A DNA stretch of 64,000 bases, taken from Orbicella franksi. Its lineage: Eukaryota. Position numbers and translations under genes: made by a program. Of this stretch, positions 2,591-35,349 are shown one piece after another (within the stretch, counting starts at the first letter, position 1; each line of letters opens with the position of its first letter). The notes under the pieces are model-generated. The model was not told the DNA's origin and did no database searches. It worked only from the letters and a program-made list of their open reading frames with translations. The stretch covers positions 3,968,001 to 4,032,000 of the forward strand of contig OZ116708.1 in NCBI GenBank assembly GCA_964199315.1, read 5' to 3'.

Positions 2591-3011
2591 CACACCTTGA
2601 TGAATTCATAACTACCAGCTTCGGTGAGGAGAGGAACACTGAAACATTGATCCCTTCGAAATCATTCTTGGCTAGGTAAGTTGGATTTTTAGAGGTCATT
2701 TTAACAAAATATTCTGGCAATTTGCATCAAAATGAAACTGCATAAGAGAAAGATTTGTCTCGTTGAAGGATTTTTGCTTTGCCAGCCCGATCATCCCTAT
2801 TTCATTCCTTACTCAGATTTTTCTTCAAACATTACGTTTTGTAACACCGACTCCCAACTTCATATCTTCAGAATCCCTTCATATCGACGTTGCGATAGAT
2901 CATGCTGGGTCAGCGAAAACAGCGGGGCATTTTACTGAATGTAATAATTTTATGCTTCTTTTCACAGGATCTGCAGACCATTAGGGGAATTTTTAATAAT
3001 CTGAGCAAATT

Positions 3012-3221
3012 ATGAATCACCCAAGTGACCTCTCTGCTCGCACAGAACGAGGCTTTACTAATAAAGAAAATGCAGAGGCAATTAAATTTGTTGCCGGAAA
3101 ACTGGCGCTCGTTGGCGACCAGCTGAACCAGTCATATGAAGAATCGCGTTGCAGCGAAGTCAGGTCATGTATAAAGCTGGAAAGTTGCTTAGACATTTTG
3201 CGTTTGGTGCTGAAGGCGTAA
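3012..3221 (+). CDS. BH3-only-like microprotein (copy B), 69 aa
   Basis: Residues 27-42 VAGKLALVGDQLNQSY fit the BH3 consensus h-s-x-x-L-x-x-h-G-D-x-h-N. Amphipathic C-terminal helix LESCLDILRLVLKA. Spliced 5' UTR, and a paralog with conserved N-terminus at 1-50. Confidence 0.8.
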   Translation: MNHPSDLSARTERGFTNKENAEAIKFVAGKLALVGDQLNQSYEESRCSEVRSCIKLESCLDILRLVLKA

Positions 3222-26800: not shown

Positions 26801-28636
26801 TTCAAAGTCCAAGCTCCAAGCATGCAAGTAAAGAGGCATGGACAACAAGTGTTGATATAGAATGCAGCTGCAGCTAAGAAAAGATTCTCTCACACAACAG
26901 AGGCTACATTTTGGTACAAAATAGATAAGATGATCTTCCTCAAAAAGGTTATGAGAACCTTAACACTGACTGCTTTATCAACAGGGTTATTACATGGCTT
27001 ATTTTCTTGAAAGATGATAGAACTGCCCAATACAAACCAGCTGCTAAAACTATTTCCAAAAGGGGTCAGGAAACAAAGATTCTTTGCCACCTGAACACTT
27101 CCCTGCACTTCTCATTTCTATAAACCTTGGTACAACCCTGCTGATAAGGAGTACACACAACTGTAAGTGAGATCATTTGTATAAGTGACTCTGACTTAAC
27201 ACACAGTAGCCCTGTTTCTGCTATTCTGGGAACATCTTTAAGGCAATAATACAAGCTTCAAATGTGCCCAAGAATCGATCTGCTTTCAACTAAACAAACA
27301 GTATATAGTCAAACACAGCCTAGATTAATATGACTTCCTGTAGATAAACACTCGATTTCACACTCATTGAACGCAAGATATATTCCCTTTCTTTGGTAGT
27401 AGTAACTGAACGGCGCCAATAGATCGATAGCAGTTGTAGTAAAGCTTGATGACCATTCAGGGATTGCAACTTGAGCTATGTTGGTCTCTCCTTTTGGGCA
27501 GGAAAACTAGTATTGTCAACTTGCATTAGCAAATATCCTTGGAATATGATGGCATTATTTGAATGTATAGTACATCTCAGCCATGGCTGGAAAACACAAG
27601 TCCAAGGATAAGACAAGTGAACTTTACAAGCAATATGCAACAATGAACTCAACATGGACACGTGCTTCCCTTCTAGTGTAAATCCACTGCACTGTTCACA
27701 AACTAGTGTGGGATACAAAAAGACAGCTTTTTACACCAGTAGTAGTCCGATATTTCACACATCACGTTCTTTCGTCCTGACACAAATCATGTACTCTTTT
27801 CAACCTGTGATGATACCCCTAGCCAGCCAGGGTTGCTGCACTGACTAACCATGAGCAGATGATTTGGGAATGGTTACGTCCCTACACAATGTAGTCTCGT
27901 GTGCCCTGTGGATATTCTTCTTCGAACATTGTTTTTAAGAGGAAAGTAAGCTTTGAAGGAGCATAAATGCAGAAAACTAGCCTGTAAGCTTTGAAAGATT
28001 CAGCAAATATTGCAAACAAGGCTTTCAACATGAAAATCCACTTTCAGTGTTCACAGTTACTGTACATGAATCTGTTGCTGAACCTTCTAAATAATTAGAA
28101 AGCTAACACCAACATCTGCAACAACTAGAACAATACTTGCACCATTCACGTCATCACTTCTTTCATATCCGAAGGAAGTAAGCTTTGAGATAAGAATATG
28201 AAGATGTGCACATGTTTACCAAGAGACATGATTGTCTTGTATCCACATTGTGACTGCTCATGCTACAGATTTCAAAGCGGAATGACCACAACTTGAAGGG
28301 AAAAAAGGCCAGTAAAGGGGTAACTACGATGTTACCAATATTACACAAACATTATACAATAACACAATTTTTCTTTTTACACATTAAACATCAATTTGTT
28401 GATTTCAAAATGATTCTGTTATTAATTAGCTTACAGTGAAGCAAAGATGATACGAAAACATACAAAGTGCACTCAATAACACAAAAATGTAATGCTATGA
28501 GGAGTCAAATTCGACATATTTAATCAAAAAGGGGTGACAACCATCTAACAAGTAGTAAATGCATAGTCTTGGTCACAATGCAGATACAATGAAAGTGTGA
28601 AAACAGGCAAGTGCGCAAAAGGAGCTGACAATATTT

Positions 28637-31219
28637 TCACTTGTTTAAGGCCAGAAGAGTTAAGCCAGCGGCACAGATACTTCCCACTGTGAACAAACTT
28701 TTCCACATGGTTTGTGACTGCGAAGATTCTGAAAAGTGAGCAGTAAAGCCGTCCTGAAAAAAAAAAAAAAAAAACACAATAAATTCAATTTCCATGTAGA
28801 GCATCAATGACTTAGCACCATTCATATTTGCAGAAGGTGATAATTACAATCAACTTAAAGGGTGGATTGAAGAGAAAGCAAAAACATACTTCCCATTATA
28901 TTATAATCCACTTACTTCTCAATACACCACTATCAATATCTTAAAATTCAGCTTGATAGCGAGACCTAGAAGACACAAACAAAAGAAATGAATAAACATG
29001 GTCATTCAATTTCCTTTGTTTGTGTCCTCTAAGCCTCACTGCCAAGCTGAATTTTAATATATCAAAAACGGTCTATTTTATGTTGCATATCATTTTAAAA
29101 CATTGTAATAAAATAATTCCATACAGGATTATAAAAGGACACATCACATTTATGACAAATATGCTACAGAGTTGCTTAGGGTGTTTAACAAAATTCAGAG
29201 ACCCGAGGATACCACACTTTATGATTATTCATACCCTTCACAGGCAGCTGTACTAAGACTAATGTATTTGTCTGCAACCAAGAAATGAGTTGGTGCAGAT
29301 GAGTGACAGTGGCTTGACAAAAAGACAAATATTAGTCTTCTGTCTGAGGACATTCTTGCCAATAACATGTTCAGTTTTGGAGGAAGGAAGTTCATTTTCA
29401 ATTAGTTTAAAAGCGACTGCGGTTCAAGATAAATGCAATTAAGACATGTATCACAACATACGATATAGTTTAAAAATTGGCAATATGGGGCATTCCACTT
29501 TTATTCTGCACCCCTCTTTACATGGCAAACTCCAGCACAGTGCCTGTTGGAATATTGTTTTTTAAAGCAGCTGAAAAAATTTTGAAACTCTTGGAAGCAA
29601 ACTTCAAAGGTGCAGAAAATAAAAAAAGATAGGGTTTTGGAATCTGCCCTTCATTGCAGGGATGCAGATAAAAAATGGAGTGTTCCAATATATGGTTAAG
29701 CAGCATAGACACCAGTATCGTAAATTTTCCCAACTTTAAACAGGGCTACACAAAGAATTCCTTCACATAAAGTGTTGCTCTTTGGAAATTGAATTTTTTG
29801 TTTAGGATTTTCTCACTGTAAAGCACTTAGGACAGCAATGTATAAGCGCTGCATAAAAGTTTTTACTATTGTTACTGGTATTATTAAAGTTCTTTATTAT
29901 TGTCATTTTGTGATTTTACTAGAGAGAAACTTGCAACACTGAAATATAAAACAGACAAAACTCTCACTAAGTGGTACAAGACATTTAAATTTTTTTAACT
30001 TGAATTTACCGGAAGCCGTGTTCTGTCTTACTGGGTAGAGCGTATAATTTTTTAGTTTGAATTACGTAACTACGACCAGTACAAAATCCACCAAAGGAGG
30101 TACTTGAATGTTAGAGGGTGATCAAAAATGCATGAATGGAAATTAACTCCCCCGGGGCAATATACTAATACGAACATTTGTCAAACGGAAATACTTTTCA
30201 CGTTTTCTTCGCGCGAATTTTCTCTATTGAATCGAAGATCGAGAAAAAGCTGAAATTCTTCTGTTCAAATTTGTTAATGAAGTTATTCACTTGTCAACAG
30301 AAACAACCAGACTATTTATGCAGTGAAAGTTGAGGAAAACAGCAAGCAGAAGAGGTGCCCCGCTGATGCAAGAAATTTTCATTTTACATGTTTACATTAT
30401 CTATGGCCCCAGAATTTGTCTCAAGATTGAAAAATTCTTCTTGAATTTGCATCAAAATAACATACCTAGGTGTTTCGAGACAAAAACGTAAACGAAATGT
30501 CGACAAGATAAATGAATGTCTGACTCATAACTAATGTAAATACAGACTGAAATTTGCATTCAGTAAATTACTACAGCACGTACGTAAGCTCATGACAGCT
30601 GGTAGGCTAAAGAGAAAAATAACAAAAAATTTTTAAAATAATGTAAAATAAATAAAAAAACCACAGCGAATTTTTTCAAAAACTCAGGATTACAACTCAC
30701 CCATCCTCCATTTTCTCTGATCCACGTTAATAAGTTATCGGCTATAAATGAGGCAATCCATTCCACGATGTGTTGAGCCATTTCTGGTCGTTGTGTTTCC
30801 ACGAAATGATGAGCCACTACGCCTCCGAACGTGAACAACGCCACTATTCTGCCCCAGTTTGTTCCTGCTTGAAAAATCTCTTGCGCCACACCGACAAACG
30901 TAGGATAAGCTGTAACTGGTGTAATTCCTAACGTTGTGCACAATGATTCGAACAAATCAGGGTGTTCTGCCTCCATAAGAGTTGCCAGTTTTCGTAGAGT
31001 ACTCGCTGATGGGTTTGTTGGCGTCTGAGGAATAAGAAACTGTCGAGGTAAACCTTTAAGTCTGCTCTGTTCAAATTTGCTCCTTAGCCGGTAAGAAATA
31101 TAGTCAAGTGTGAGGGAAACTCCTTCGTCGATGATTTTCTTATCGTACCTTGACATTTCAGAGGTATTGAGGGTAGGAGAAAGGTCCTCGTTGTTCAGCG
31201 CAGCTGTCGCTCCGGCCAT
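28637..31219 (-). CDS. Pro-survival Bcl-2 family protein (Bcl-xL/Bcl-w type), 211 aa, two coding exons (30701-31219 and 28637-28753)
   Basis: BH4 LTLDYISYRL; LGITPVTAYPTF..VAQEIFQAGTNWGRIVALFTFGG (BH1); WIRENGGW|DGF with the intron at the conserved BH2 position (GTGAGT...TTTTCAG); C-terminal anchor WKSLFTVGSICAAGLTLLALNK. 5' UTR intron at about 31338-31482. Confidence 0.93.
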
Positions 31220-31559
31220 ATTGAGTGATCGTAGTTAGAAAAGTGAAAGTGTTCGCACGCAAATTCCTTGTTTCGGCCCTGCAGTTTGTTTTTCTTCTTT
31301 AAACAAGGATACAATTTAAGGAAATGGTATCTTTGTCCTAAAAAGAGAAAAAGACATTAAAACCAAGCACCGTTGTCGGTGGCGTACTTCCTTGCTGACG
31401 CATCAACGTAACCGCACTAGTAGTGAGCTTAGTGAAAACACAACCGAGTGCTCCCGTTAAAAGAAAAAATATATATACTCACAGAAGTTAACCAATGTTC
31501 AAAACACTTGGCATAGTACTTGAAATAGCAATTTAAAAAGCAAAAGCAAAGGAGAAGTA

Positions 31560-32560
31560 GAGAGTAGAAGCAAGCCTTGGCGCGGAAGCACTAAAATAAC
31601 TACCACCATCAAACGAGCCTTGCAGTGGCGAAGAAATGTCGCTAAAGAAAAATTTCTTTGGCACGCCGCTCTCTTACGTGATTGGTCAGCTTGACAAGTT
31701 AGTGCTTTCTGATTGGTTCCGGTTGATGACCTGTCAACACACTTCTTTCCGTTGAATTTCATCAAGAGATGAGGTCACTGAGATATATGGAACAGAAAAT
31801 TAAACATTGACGGGAAAATTTTATTTGTTCCACTCAAGATATCTGTCAGTTATTACAAAAGTAGCATTCTGCCTCCCAAAAAGACTCATTGGAACAAAGT
31901 CTGACCCGAAAATCGTACGAATTTTCAACTACGGTTTGCAGAGATCTTGCGAAACGAAAGTAGAACAAAAAGTACATATGTAAGCGAAAAGTAAACATAC
32001 ACAATGTTTTCGCCGAATCTTTCTCGACGCCTACCATGAATAATTTTGTTTGCTCTTAGCTCTATGTCACCCGTAAGGCTAAAGAATCACCAAGCATTAA
32101 AAGAAACGCTTTGAAATGTATAATAAAGATTGTAAAATCGAGAAATTTAGGTTGAATTGTCAAGATCATCAATATGTTGGAAAATTATGCAAATTAACCT
32201 CAAAGTGCATTTTCATGAATTATTAATGTTAAAACATGGTCGAAAACCAAAAGAAAGCGTGGTTTTGGTGTGCTCTTGTTTTGAAACTAAAACCGTAAGC
32301 TTGTGCACGTGGACAACGGAATACACATCAAAAGAACAACTTTGATTGGTCAAGAAACAATGGCAATAACACGCGCGCGAACTATTGTCCTTGAGACAAT
32401 AGCAGGACTGACAACGTCTTAGACGCGAGCCAATCAAAAAATACAAAAATATTGCAACGTATTATTTGGCAGAATATCAAAAATAGGTGAATATATTTAT
32501 ACGCAGTTAAATATTTTTTTCGCGGGAACTTTTTTTTGGCGACGTTCAGTGAGTGAAGAG
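31560..32560. promoter_or_regulatory. Divergent promoter region between the Bcl-xL-like gene and BH3-only gene C
   Basis: ATTGG/CCAAT boxes at 31681, 31712, 32345 and 32430; E2F-like TTGGCGCGGAA (31577-31587) and TTTCGCGGGAA (32518-32528). Confidence 0.55.
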
Positions 32561-33175
32561 GCAAAAGACATTCGTTGCGAGAAGACCGACTGCCGAACAT
32601 TCGGTCTTGCCATGAATTTTGCCCTTCCTTGAGGAAGGTTAACAGTACTTGAAGTAATTACCAGCGAAGGAGAACTTTCTGCGACCGTCTTTCCTTGTCA
32701 AACAAGTTAGCTTCGAAGGCGAAACTTCAAGCAACAAGTTGTTGACTATTAAAGAAGCGAGCCGCTTGAAGATCATTTTATTTCGCCCTGGTAAGTGGCA
32801 TATTGAAAGCTTTCCACGAACAGGGCGTTAAATTACGTAGCTAACTGTCTTCCACAGCTTATCCAAGATGCTTTTATGGGCCATCTGCTTTCAAAGTTTT
32901 TATTTTGAAAGCTCGGATAGGAAATGGGTTCGCGAGCGGCTCTTTCTTTGCCGAGAATATAAATATATAAACAAGGGTAGTTGTTGTGCTTCACAGGGGT
33001 GTGAGACATAAAAGAAGCCGATAATTTCAATTTGCTTTTCTAAATGGTCATAACAGAGCAAAGTATGACTAATGGGCTGTCCTCTTTAGCAAAATAACTT
33101 CGAGTTTAACCTGTCCTCAACTCATGCCCATCTGTTTATTATATAGACCGCTTGGAGAGGATATACGTAACTGGT

Positions 33176-33430
33176 ATGGACCGCGACAAGCCAAGATCAG
33201 CCGGCAGCAAGCCACAAATAAATCAACTGGCTTGTCCTTCATGTGAATTGAGTCAAGAAAGTAAAGAATTATGCCGAGAAATTGGGAAGGTGTTGGCCAG
33301 AATTGGAGATAGAATAAACGCTTTGCAACTGACAAGGAATGGACACAATCTTCACATCAACTGTCGCGATGGCGAAAGGATAAACGATGATGATACGAGA
33401 CCCAGGACGGGGGTGAATAAACTTCCGTAA
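33176..33430 (+). CDS. BH3-only-like protein (gene C), 84 aa
   Basis: ATG at 33176 follows an acceptor at 33146; non-coding exon 1 ends CCTG|GTAAGT at 32790/32791. Residues 36-50 IGKVLARIGDRINAL are a canonical, BAK-like BH3. No BH1/BH2 or transmembrane segment follows. Confidence 0.8.
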   Translation: MDRDKPRSAGSKPQINQLACPSCELSQESKELCREIGKVLARIGDRINALQLTRNGHNLHINCRDGERINDDDTRPRTGVNKLP

Positions 33431-35349
33431 ATACCGGAAGGTTTTTATCTACCAATTACTTTTAAAAATTCTATTTCTACGCCAGAAGAATTGTACATAT
33501 TATATGCAGATTTTGCTGTAATCTAGATGTAACGTACTTCATTTTGGAAATGCGTATATGTATAATAGTTTTTAAGACTCGAGCTGTGAGCTTTGTAATT
33601 TGCATCGCTGATTTTACGAAAACAACAGTTCCTGAGACGAATTGTTTTAAAAGGAAAACCCAATCTTCAAAACGCATGTAAATAGTTTTCACAATAGCAG
33701 TGACATACAAATAAAATCAGCTGATGAAGAGCAATATTTTGGTACTTAGTGTCCATAGCAACTTATTGTTCTCCCGGCGAGGACATTTGACACAATGGCG
33801 CTAAAATAGCGAAACAACAGTGACTTTGCACAATGGTTCTTTATGCTTTGAGGAATCAATGATACCATTGTTCGCTGCAAACTAATATATTCCGATTGCA
33901 CGGGCTGATCAGTGGATTTTTCTGCAAAAGCGGCATCTGGAATTTTTGCAGGGTTTTGTCAACAACTAACTTTGATACGTCGAGACGAATGAAAGAGAAA
34001 AGCCCTTGAGGCCAAGGTTTATTAAGTCGGACAGAATTAGTTGCTTTTTTGGGTGGTCGACCTGGGGTGTTAACCTTCCCGCTATACTGTGACCGATTTA
34101 ATAACAAAACGCAACAATATTTTGACTGTATACATCAATGAAGCTTTGTTCTCCCTTCGCTCGACCAGCCAAGTCGCACTGATTGAGAAATCTATCAAAA
34201 GGGATGGGTTCTTGCCTGTTCCGTACTATAAACATTGCCGCTCTTTTTTCCTAGGGTCAGCAATTTGTCTTCTGATATCATGACTTAGGTTTGCAGGGTT
34301 TCCTTGGCTTTTCTGACCCGTCAAGGTTTCAATCAAGTCATTTGTTACGCTCGATTTTCCAGAGTTAAATTTCTTCTCCCAAGCCGGTGTTTTAAACCTT
34401 TGCCTTTTCCTGTGATTGCATAATCATTTTACGAAAAGGTTGTCTGGCTTCGAATTCTGCGCGCAGAGAAGATAGTTCGTGATTTCAAAGATCGTTCATG
34501 GTGAGTCGAATATCACAGAAACTTCAAGAGTGTTTCACATCACGCTTTCTACACGAATTTCTTTTTCTGACAAACTATACCCTCGCAGTGCCGGTAATAT
34601 AAACAGATAACATTACTGTTGTTTTCAAAGTTTTGCTTCTGTGAAATTAAATCGATATTTCCTTTGACGAGTGGGCAGTAAACATTAATGAGAGATAAGT
34701 CTAAAAAATTGTGCTGGAAGGATCGAGATTCTAATGATGATAAAATTTCACCGCAAAAACAACAGACTGACTTATACCACAATGTCTGTCTGTTTATAAA
34801 ATCACGTGCAAAACAAATACACAATATCAAAGTTTGCAAAACAAACTCGACGCCTGCATAACATGCGCAGTAACCGACAATATAAGAGGGGAATTTTAAG
34901 CAATACAGTAAAGTAAAATCGCGCTATCTCAGACAAGGAGAATTAGAAATAGGCATTAGTAAATGACAGAAAGAGTATATCCAAAATAATTTCAATTCGA
35001 GATAGCGGGGAATGAGAGATACCCGGTTTCAACTGTTTTAGCGAGGAGTCTGAGAACGAGATATTACATCATTGCCGGGGACAAAAGCTTACTCCGTTTT
35101 CAGTGTTTGTCTGCTTGGCTCTGTGTATCACAGGAAAAAACTCGATTTTGAATACTCGATCTTGGGAATTTTTCGAAGTAAAGGATGTCAAAATTTGTTC
35201 CGTCCAGTTTAGTTCTCCCTCGATCTCAGACTGCTGAAGTGGATGAATTTAAGTGGGTTTCTGTCACTTCGTTACACAGTAGAACCACCGGTTGTCTCGA
35301 TCGAACTCCGCACTTATCTCGATCTCAAATCATTTTTTCCTTTTTGTAT

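Follow-up and report, generated by a model that had tools for sequence, protein, structure and literature searches.

A Short Spliced Gene Conserved Head-to-Head with a Bcl-2 Gene in Stony Corals and Sea Anemones Probably Encodes a BH3-Only Protein

An 84-codon open reading frame (ORF) in the genome of the coral Orbicella franksi is a real gene that is spliced, expressed and conserved. Its product, a mostly disordered, soluble protein of 84 amino acids, is likely to be a BH3-only trigger of mitochondrial apoptosis that acts by binding the groove of Bcl-2-fold proteins. BH3-only proteins sense stress and determine when the mitochondrial death pathway is set off, and the control of apoptosis is central to coral bleaching, disease and symbiont regulation; to our knowledge, these proteins are the least catalogued part of the pathway in corals. 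The Bcl-2 and caspase genes of Acropora have been catalogued, and in that work the characterization of BH3-only proteins was described as “of particular importance” but difficult, and their repertoire was left open (Moya et al., 2016; PMC4715348).

The gene was analyzed within a stretch of 64,000 nucleotides (the window: assembly GCA_964199315.1, contig OZ116708.1, positions 3,968,001-4,032,000), and positions given below without a locus or contig name are window positions. An earlier reading of the window from its sequence alone (hereafter the sequence-only reading) had described an 84-residue ORF at 33176-33430 with a full BH3 core, a CPSC motif and a further Cys, and this description was confirmed. 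The features of the gene, its protein and its neighbor are collected in Table 1.

Table 1. Features of the 84-codon gene, its upstream region and the neighboring Bcl-2 gene (window positions)
Feature	Position	Strand	Basis
Pro-survival-type Bcl-2 gene, divergently transcribed	28637..31618	-	PF00452, 106 bits
Neighbor Bcl-2, TM exon	about 28637-28753	-	boundary inferred from orthologue alignment
Neighbor Bcl-2, main exon, ATG at 31219	30701-31336	-	ORFs, joint
Neighbor Bcl-2, 5′-UTR intron	31337-31481	-	joint 31336->31482 in RNA reads
Neighbor Bcl-2, 5′ exon	about 31482-31618	-	read starts, joint
Conserved upstream block, promoter and/or 5′ leader	32226..32640	+	six-species alignment, motif positions
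E-box-like GCACGTGG	32305-32312	+	consensus reading
CCAAT box	32429-32435	+	consensus reading
Ultra-conserved element of ~50 nt with TATA-like stretch and E2F-like TTTCGCGGGAA (32518-32528)	32486-32540	+	alignment
uORF in 5′ leader, 6 codons, MNFALP-stop	32612..32632	+	7 stony-coral loci
Exon 1, non-coding	32637..32790	+	X5 contig spans 32637-32790; stranded X21 reads
Invariant palindrome CAACAAGTTGTTG in exon 1	32732-32744	+	alignment
Intron in 5′ UTR, 356 nt, GT..AG	32791..33146	+	spliced RNA reads and contigs
Exon 2: 29-nt leader, whole CDS and ~300-nt 3′ UTR	33147..33730	+	depth profile
CDS, 84 aa and stop	33176..33430	+	ORF call, orthologue alignment, dN/dS
CPSC, residues 20-23	33233..33244	+	alignments; kept in stony corals only
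Predicted amphipathic helix, residues 27-54, with C33 (33272-33274) and BH3 core	33254..33337	+	AlphaFold2
Hydrophilic C-terminal tail, residues 64-84, ending GVNKLP	33365..33427	+	invariant end in stony corals

Gene Structure and Expression

The ORF is located on the plus strand (ATG at 33176, stop codon at 33428-33430). RNA was mapped on the segment 28500-34400 using two raw poly(A) RNA-seq runs (X21 and X23) together with the contigs of X5 and X1. The junction joining 32790 to 33147, which the sequence-only reading had predicted, is found at exactly these positions in all four runs, namely in nine reads with four starts in X21, in six reads in X23, and in contigs of X5 and X1. The spliced reads match the proposed layout, in which exon 1 is non-coding and one further exon contains the whole CDS. 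The stranded run X21 has its first mates on the minus strand, as fits a plus-strand RNA, and its read depth is about 8 on exon 1, 28-33 over 33228-33621, 6 over 33622-33818 and 0 beyond. An AATAAA polyadenylation signal is present in exon 2 (33710-33715), the 3′ end of which is approximate. The 3′ end of exon 1 is exact, and transcription starts somewhere between ~32480 and 32670; some stranded X21 reads also map to the bin 32440-32636, 5′ of the contig-covered part of exon 1.

In the four runs, across 28500-34400, exon 2 has no outgoing joint or loose end, and the transcript accordingly stops short of BH1 or BH2 exons. Onward splicing of this kind, which would have made the gene a Bak or Bax and was named with the sequence-only reading as its possible refutation, is therefore absent, and transcription ends ~300 nt past the stop codon. 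Spliced cDNA contigs of other species (L006 and L013, from Logan) lack the same intron and contain the complete ORF, and the gene stretch is represented in RNA-library contigs of 12 studies.

Features of the Encoded Protein

The BH3 core, IGKVLARIGDRI, comprises residues 36-47 (33281-33316) and includes I36, L40, I43, G44, D45 and I47, with the four hydrophobic positions (h1-h4) sharing one face of the helix, h2 occupied by Leu, and h3 followed by a small residue and Asp. AlphaFold2, supplied with the family alignment, predicts a single helix spanning residues 27-54 with pLDDT up to 94, the remainder of the chain scoring 50-57, and the hydrophobic moment peaks at 0.76 over residues 30-47. By prediction, then, the protein is a short disordered chain carrying a BH3 helix. 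No transmembrane segment was detected (maximum Kyte-Doolittle value over 19 residues, 0.34; GRAVY, -0.99), and because no window of 19 residues is hydrophobic enough, the protein has no membrane anchor, in agreement with the sequence-only reading, which had also noted the hydrophilic tail. A Pfam search with the 84-aa protein gave no match at E-values up to 10, and phmmer with the full-length sequence against the PDB retrieved designed helical repeat proteins only, an uninformative result. Judging from the Pfam search, the single predicted helix and the end of the transcript, the protein has no BH1, BH2 or BH4 and no Bcl-2 fold.

Besides the two Cys of CPSC, the protein contains Cys at residues 33 and 63. 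A redox or metal role of CPSC, put forward in the sequence-only reading, has lost ground since the CxxC is confined to stony corals. In distant members this position reads YESN, CEAN, CEPN, SSST or YHPT; CPSC is missing from proteins P0064, P0065, P0067 and P0083 and from that of Exaiptasia, and the CxxC is imperfect in a few stony corals too. A metal site was considered and rejected, given that the AlphaFold2 monomer has no compact Cys/His cluster and that the CxxC is lineage-limited.

Conservation and Selection in Hexacorals

A word-indexed search retrieved ten clusters of orthologues with 65-87% identity, one of them annotated merely as a hypothetical protein, from Oculina patagonica. More distant members came from a profile search of 1.84 billion representatives, which yielded no match in a named family; the repeat protein P0066, retrieved in the same search, was discarded as a spurious match. 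A third search with a wider alignment contributed an “unnamed protein product” of Porites lobata and the anemone-type members of 87 residues. The profile searches, covering 1.84 and 5.8 billion proteins, gave no hydrozoan member. The orthologues comprise more than 20 protein clusters with 42-87% identity, from Oculina, Porites and many further coral assemblies among other sources, all members starting at the same Met, and those of stony corals share the same stop codon after the terminal GVNKLP.

Selection was estimated by pairwise NG86 comparison of nine stony-coral coding sequences (CDSs), with dS reaching 1-1.5, and the median dN/dS is 0.24. Together with the breadth of the family, this value answers the concern, stated with the sequence-only reading, that the ORF might not be conserved. 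Along the protein, dN/dS is 0.53 for residues 1-18, 0.055 for residues 19-33, 0.12 for the BH3 core (residues 34-50), 0.40 for residues 51-63 and, with low dS, 0.18 for residues 64-84. These ratios place the CDS under purifying selection that is strongest around the BH3. The alignment columns that stay unchanged between stony corals and Exaiptasia are M1, E28, C33, G37, L40, A41, G44 and D45, and all of these other than the initiator Met map to the BH3 helix; C33 is the sole invariant Cys, and L40, G44 and D45 are invariant in all family members aligned. In the L011/P0065 lineage the tail after residue 63 is lost entirely and the BH3 is kept; in Exaiptasia-type members the C-terminal tail is replaced.

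A separate observation concerns codons 51-84 (33326-33427), where dS is 0.32-0.46 compared with ~1.0-1.15 in codons 19-50, in a small sample of non-independent pairs. This lower synonymous divergence hints at extra constraint at the nucleotide level on the 3′ third of the CDS.

The BH3 Motif and Its Relatives

A BH3-type pattern is not rare by chance: it matched twice in the 114,212 residues of six-frame ORFs, that is, about once per 50-60 thousand residues. BH3-like motifs also occur in non-apoptotic proteins. The motif therefore needs context to carry meaning. The complete ORF, in contrast, with its conservation, its purifying selection and its splicing and expression as predicted, goes well past what chance would produce. 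A 33-position profile of residues 25-56, compared with all PDB chains, gave 56 matches, nearly all of them BH3 segments of Bcl-2-family proteins. The best match is Bak (5fmj_B, E = 5.4e-4), human Bak peptides score 3-6e-3 and Hydra Bak1 scores 3.2e-3, followed by Bid, Bax, Bik, sponge Bak-2, Puma and Bim. With Bak peptides at the top of this list, “Bak-like BH3”, the term used in the sequence-only reading, is an objective description of the motif. The nearest named clusters in the feature space of the ESM Atlas are Noxa (0.85), PXT1, BMF, Bim and BIK, which we treat as a lead only. A literature full-text search for the motif string LARIGD returned no paper.

A search of the genome with the whole 84-aa protein found a single copy and one noise match (E = 0.9). 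When the family HMM was run against another ORF of the window (3000-3218), it scored E = 0.095 over the BH3 alone. The sequence-only reading had seen no clear similarity beyond the motif between this gene and two other BH3-only ORFs of the window (its copies A and B), and had concluded that the locus holds two distinct BH3-only types; the restriction of the HMM overlap to the BH3 agrees with the former statement and supports the latter. Elsewhere in the genome, a search with the BH3-region profile detected two ORFs with very similar BH3 cores, namely REIGRTLARIGDGLNQ, followed by a hydrophobic tail (L016, C6:26920737-26920802, minus strand), and REIGSMLRKIGDELNN (L017, C1:43209932-43209991, minus strand). 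Neither adjoins a Bcl-2 domain match, and both are possible additional BH3-only genes by the likeness of their cores.

Conserved Linkage to a Bcl-2 Gene

The neighboring gene encodes a pro-survival-type Bcl-2 protein with a BH4-like segment, BH3, NWGR (BH1), GGW (BH2) and a TM tail, and has the classical intron after GGW and before the TM exon. Its named orthologues are “apoptosis regulator R1-like” in Stylophora and “Bcl-2” in Exaiptasia, and its transcription starts at ~31600-31618, according to read starts. The genome encodes 12 other proteins with a Bcl-2 domain. At 28894-29090, inside the Bcl-2 intron, each of the four RNA runs has very high, discordant read depth together with strand-switch joints and numerous loose ends; the segment resembles a repeat or an unrelated element with high expression.

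A PF00452 gene is present head-to-head upstream in every orthologous locus that is long enough to show it. There are eight such loci: the window, L003, L004 (Oculina), L007, L008, the divergent L011, L012 and L014 (Exaiptasia). In all of them the two ATGs of the pair are 1.6-2.0 kb apart. The Bcl-2 of L012 is nearest to a Nematostella fragment, which by a rough inference from Bcl-2 identity places L012 in an anemone lineage. In Exaiptasia diaphana (GCA_001417965.1, LJWW01000101.1), an unannotated ORF of 87 codons (L014:7921-8184, minus strand) is located between annotated genes, on the strand opposite to the annotated Bcl-2 (P0049) and 1.8 kb from it, and has the core C..IG..LA.IGD. Among 1,887 ORFs searched with the family HMM, it is the sole significant one outside the loci from which the HMM was built (E = 1.6e-7). 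Because the linkage is found in both stony corals and sea anemones, the pair predates their split. We know of no comparable conserved pair of ligand and target genes in the Bcl-2 family, for which such linkage is unusual.

The linkage does not imply co-expression, since the two genes show no fixed expression ratio: in X21 the depth is ~30 for the BH3-only gene and ~0-6 for Bcl-2, and in X23 it is ~340 for Bcl-2 and ~6 for the BH3-only gene. With the transcription starts 0.9-1.0 kb apart and the ratio swinging this widely, a tightly shared bidirectional promoter is unlikely and was rejected.

Predicted Complex with the Neighboring Bcl-2

A complex was modeled from residues 20-174 of the neighboring Bcl-2 and residues 19-63 of the BH3-only protein. 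The complex score is 0.86 compared with 0.01 for the best of three controls, a value that, many Bcl-2:BH3 complexes having been solved, shows likeness to them rather than binding of this pair or a choice among paralogues, and that may in part be recall of the solved structures. In calibration, 51 of 78 solved complexes attained this mark, as did 2 of 108 mismatched pairs. Three runs of the model have at least 76% of contacts in common, with partner pLDDT of at least 67. The modeled interface is canonical: L40 is placed among V111, I115, A127, L128 and F131 of Bcl-2, and D45 contacts N121, G123 and R124 of the NWGR motif, so that in silico the helix docks in the canonical groove with the contact between Asp and the Arg of NWGR. 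The BH3 helix is thus predicted to fit the groove of the neighboring pro-survival Bcl-2.

Two cysteines deserve mention in this model. C33 of the BH3-only protein faces the predicted groove, where it contacts T107, G110, V111 and E114. Cys94 of Bcl-2 (30938-30940, minus strand, in LFES.C) is placed at the predicted rim of the groove and is invariant from stony corals to Exaiptasia.

Upstream Control Region

Six stony corals, the introns and UTRs of which have diverged elsewhere, share invariant blocks in the 900 nt upstream of the ATG. The region includes more than one CCAAT box, and the ultra-conserved element at 32486-32540 contains T-runs in addition to TTTCGCGGGAA. Assignment of E-box, E2F-type and CCAAT factors to these consensus sites is putative. 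The 32486-32540 element is also present in L003, L004, L006, L007, L008, L009 and L013, and is nearly invariant even in L013, the protein of which is ~50% identical. Since L006 and L013 are spliced cDNA contigs, part of the upstream block may be transcribed, and the element may be a promoter core, an element of the 5′-leader RNA, or both.

The MNFALP uORF, which holds the sole upstream ATG of the spliced leader in the window, is found at the same position in seven stony-coral loci, where its stop codon is TGA, TAA or TAG; in the distant L013, a shorter uORF begins at an upstream ATG in the same place. The uORF may have a regulatory function. A hairpin is an alternative reading, because a CCTTCC-loop-GGAAGG palindrome overlaps the uORF. 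An Rfam search of 32200-33900 gave no match, and no AU-rich elements were seen by eye in the 3′ UTR. Stresses that activate the gene might be identified through this strongly conserved control region.

Proposed Function and Alternatives

The preferred explanation, a BH3-only trigger of apoptosis, implies the following course of events. Once the gene is switched on, Bcl-2-fold proteins would receive the BH3 helix in their hydrophobic groove, and the partner to consider first is the pro-survival Bcl-2 of the opposite strand, 2 kb from the gene. The pockets of the groove would be filled by L40 together with the three remaining hydrophobic positions, and D45 would pair with the Arg of NWGR (BH1). 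The survival protein would be neutralized, and/or Bak/Bax directly activated, and the cell would be driven towards mitochondrial apoptosis. The gene is probably controlled at the level of synthesis, through the deeply conserved upstream region and the short conserved uORF. Of these components, groove binding comes from the modeled complex, and the pro-death activity and the regulators are inferred. It is also conceivable, if doubtful, that the two genes constitute an ancient, selectively maintained death/survival module with a conserved control region and uORF, within which cysteine tuning might operate through C33 on the groove face and C94 at the groove rim of the modeled complex.

The linkage and the predicted groove binding would equally well suit a dedicated regulator of the neighboring Bcl-2 that, in the manner of Beclin-1-type BH3 proteins, is not primarily a killer and might tune, for instance, autophagy, mitochondrial dynamics, calcium or symbiont handling. 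Further partners for such a modulator are suggested by the segments conserved outside the BH3 (TRNGH, NC and, in stony corals, the C-terminal GVNKLP), which a pure BH3-ligand model leaves unexplained. We nevertheless regard this reading as improbable: the protein is tiny and has no other domain, the BH3 itself is its most constrained part and is retained by the lineages that lose or replace the tail, and its closest counterparts are Bak and BH3-only proteins with pro-death activity. Nor is it likely that the BH3 is a coincidence in a microprotein unrelated to the Bcl-2 family, one that acts in metal or redox chemistry through its Cys and His residues or through the C-terminal motif. The motif can arise by chance, there is no Pfam match, and in stony corals the four Cys and two His are well conserved and the tail is invariant; the BH3 core, however, stays invariant in distant members, which do not retain the CxxC, H57, C63 or the tail, and AlphaFold2 finds no compact metal site. 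Coincidence would also leave unexplained the linkage to Bcl-2 in eight loci from stony corals to anemones and a list of PDB matches consisting almost only of BH3 segments.

We consider it very improbable that the ORF is not a separate gene, whether it arose by chance in a non-coding RNA or supplies the BH3 exon to a Bak/Bax-like gene with several domains. The Bak-like character of the motif speaks for this and nothing further does; the dN/dS, the conserved start and stop, the complete ORF in the spliced cDNA contigs L006 and L013, and the lack of splicing past the stop codon, with coverage ending ~300 nt downstream at the polyadenylation signal, all speak against it. As a probable BH3-only gene that is expressed, distributed across hexacorals, represented by an orthologue in the laboratory anemone Exaiptasia and provided with an adjoining Bcl-2 as a first partner, it is a concrete target for study.

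Comparison with Known BH3 Proteins

Potential BH3-only proteins of Acropora and Nematostella have been presented (Suraweera et al., 2022, Fig. 5; PMC8998228), and, in the part of that source considered here, they resemble the coral gene in that one exon contains the BH3 and disorder is predicted, and linkage to Bcl-2 is not mentioned. The protein described here would be a new, unannotated BH3-only member, with the qualification that these candidates may include the family.

Another small cnidarian protein with a BH3 only is HyBH3-only-2 of Hydra vulgaris, for which the work of Lasi et al. in 2010 is reportedly the source. HyBH3-only-2 is pro-apoptotic, and its peptide binds the pro-survival HyBcl-2-4 at 149 nM (Banjara et al., 2020; PMC7489894). 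Its core, ..IG..L..IGD.I., is very similar to that of the coral protein. In contrast, the Cys pattern, the TRNGH segment and the GVNKLP tail are specific to the coral family in a comparison with the 26-residue Hydra peptide, and, unlike the coral family, HyBH3-only-2 has no reported linkage to a Bcl-2 gene. The likeness of the two cores could represent either homology or convergence.

The best statistical match to the coral BH3 is that of Bak (PDB 5fmj_B and 2jby_B; Hydra Bak1, 6wgz_C; E = 5.4e-4 to 6e-3), the two sharing G at h1+1, L-A at h2/h2+1 and I/F-G-D followed by I-N. However, Bak forms pores and has several domains, including BH1, BH2 and a TM segment, whereas the coral gene has none of these and is not spliced to such exons. 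The features of a Bak/Bax effector, BH1 and BH2 in a PF00452 domain on the same transcript, are absent, the nearest PF00452 domain belonging to the separate minus-strand gene.

Noxa (PMAIP1; PF15150) is, like the coral protein, a very short, soluble BH3-only protein, and the two have a feature similarity of 0.85. The PF15150 profile does not match the coral protein (Pfam, E up to 10), and the likeness is a lead from feature space, without evidence of common descent. Both proteins have a Cys on the groove face just N-terminal of the BH3, that of the coral protein being one helical turn further from L(h2) than that of Noxa; in human NOXA, C25 can form a disulfide bond with C55 of BFL-1.
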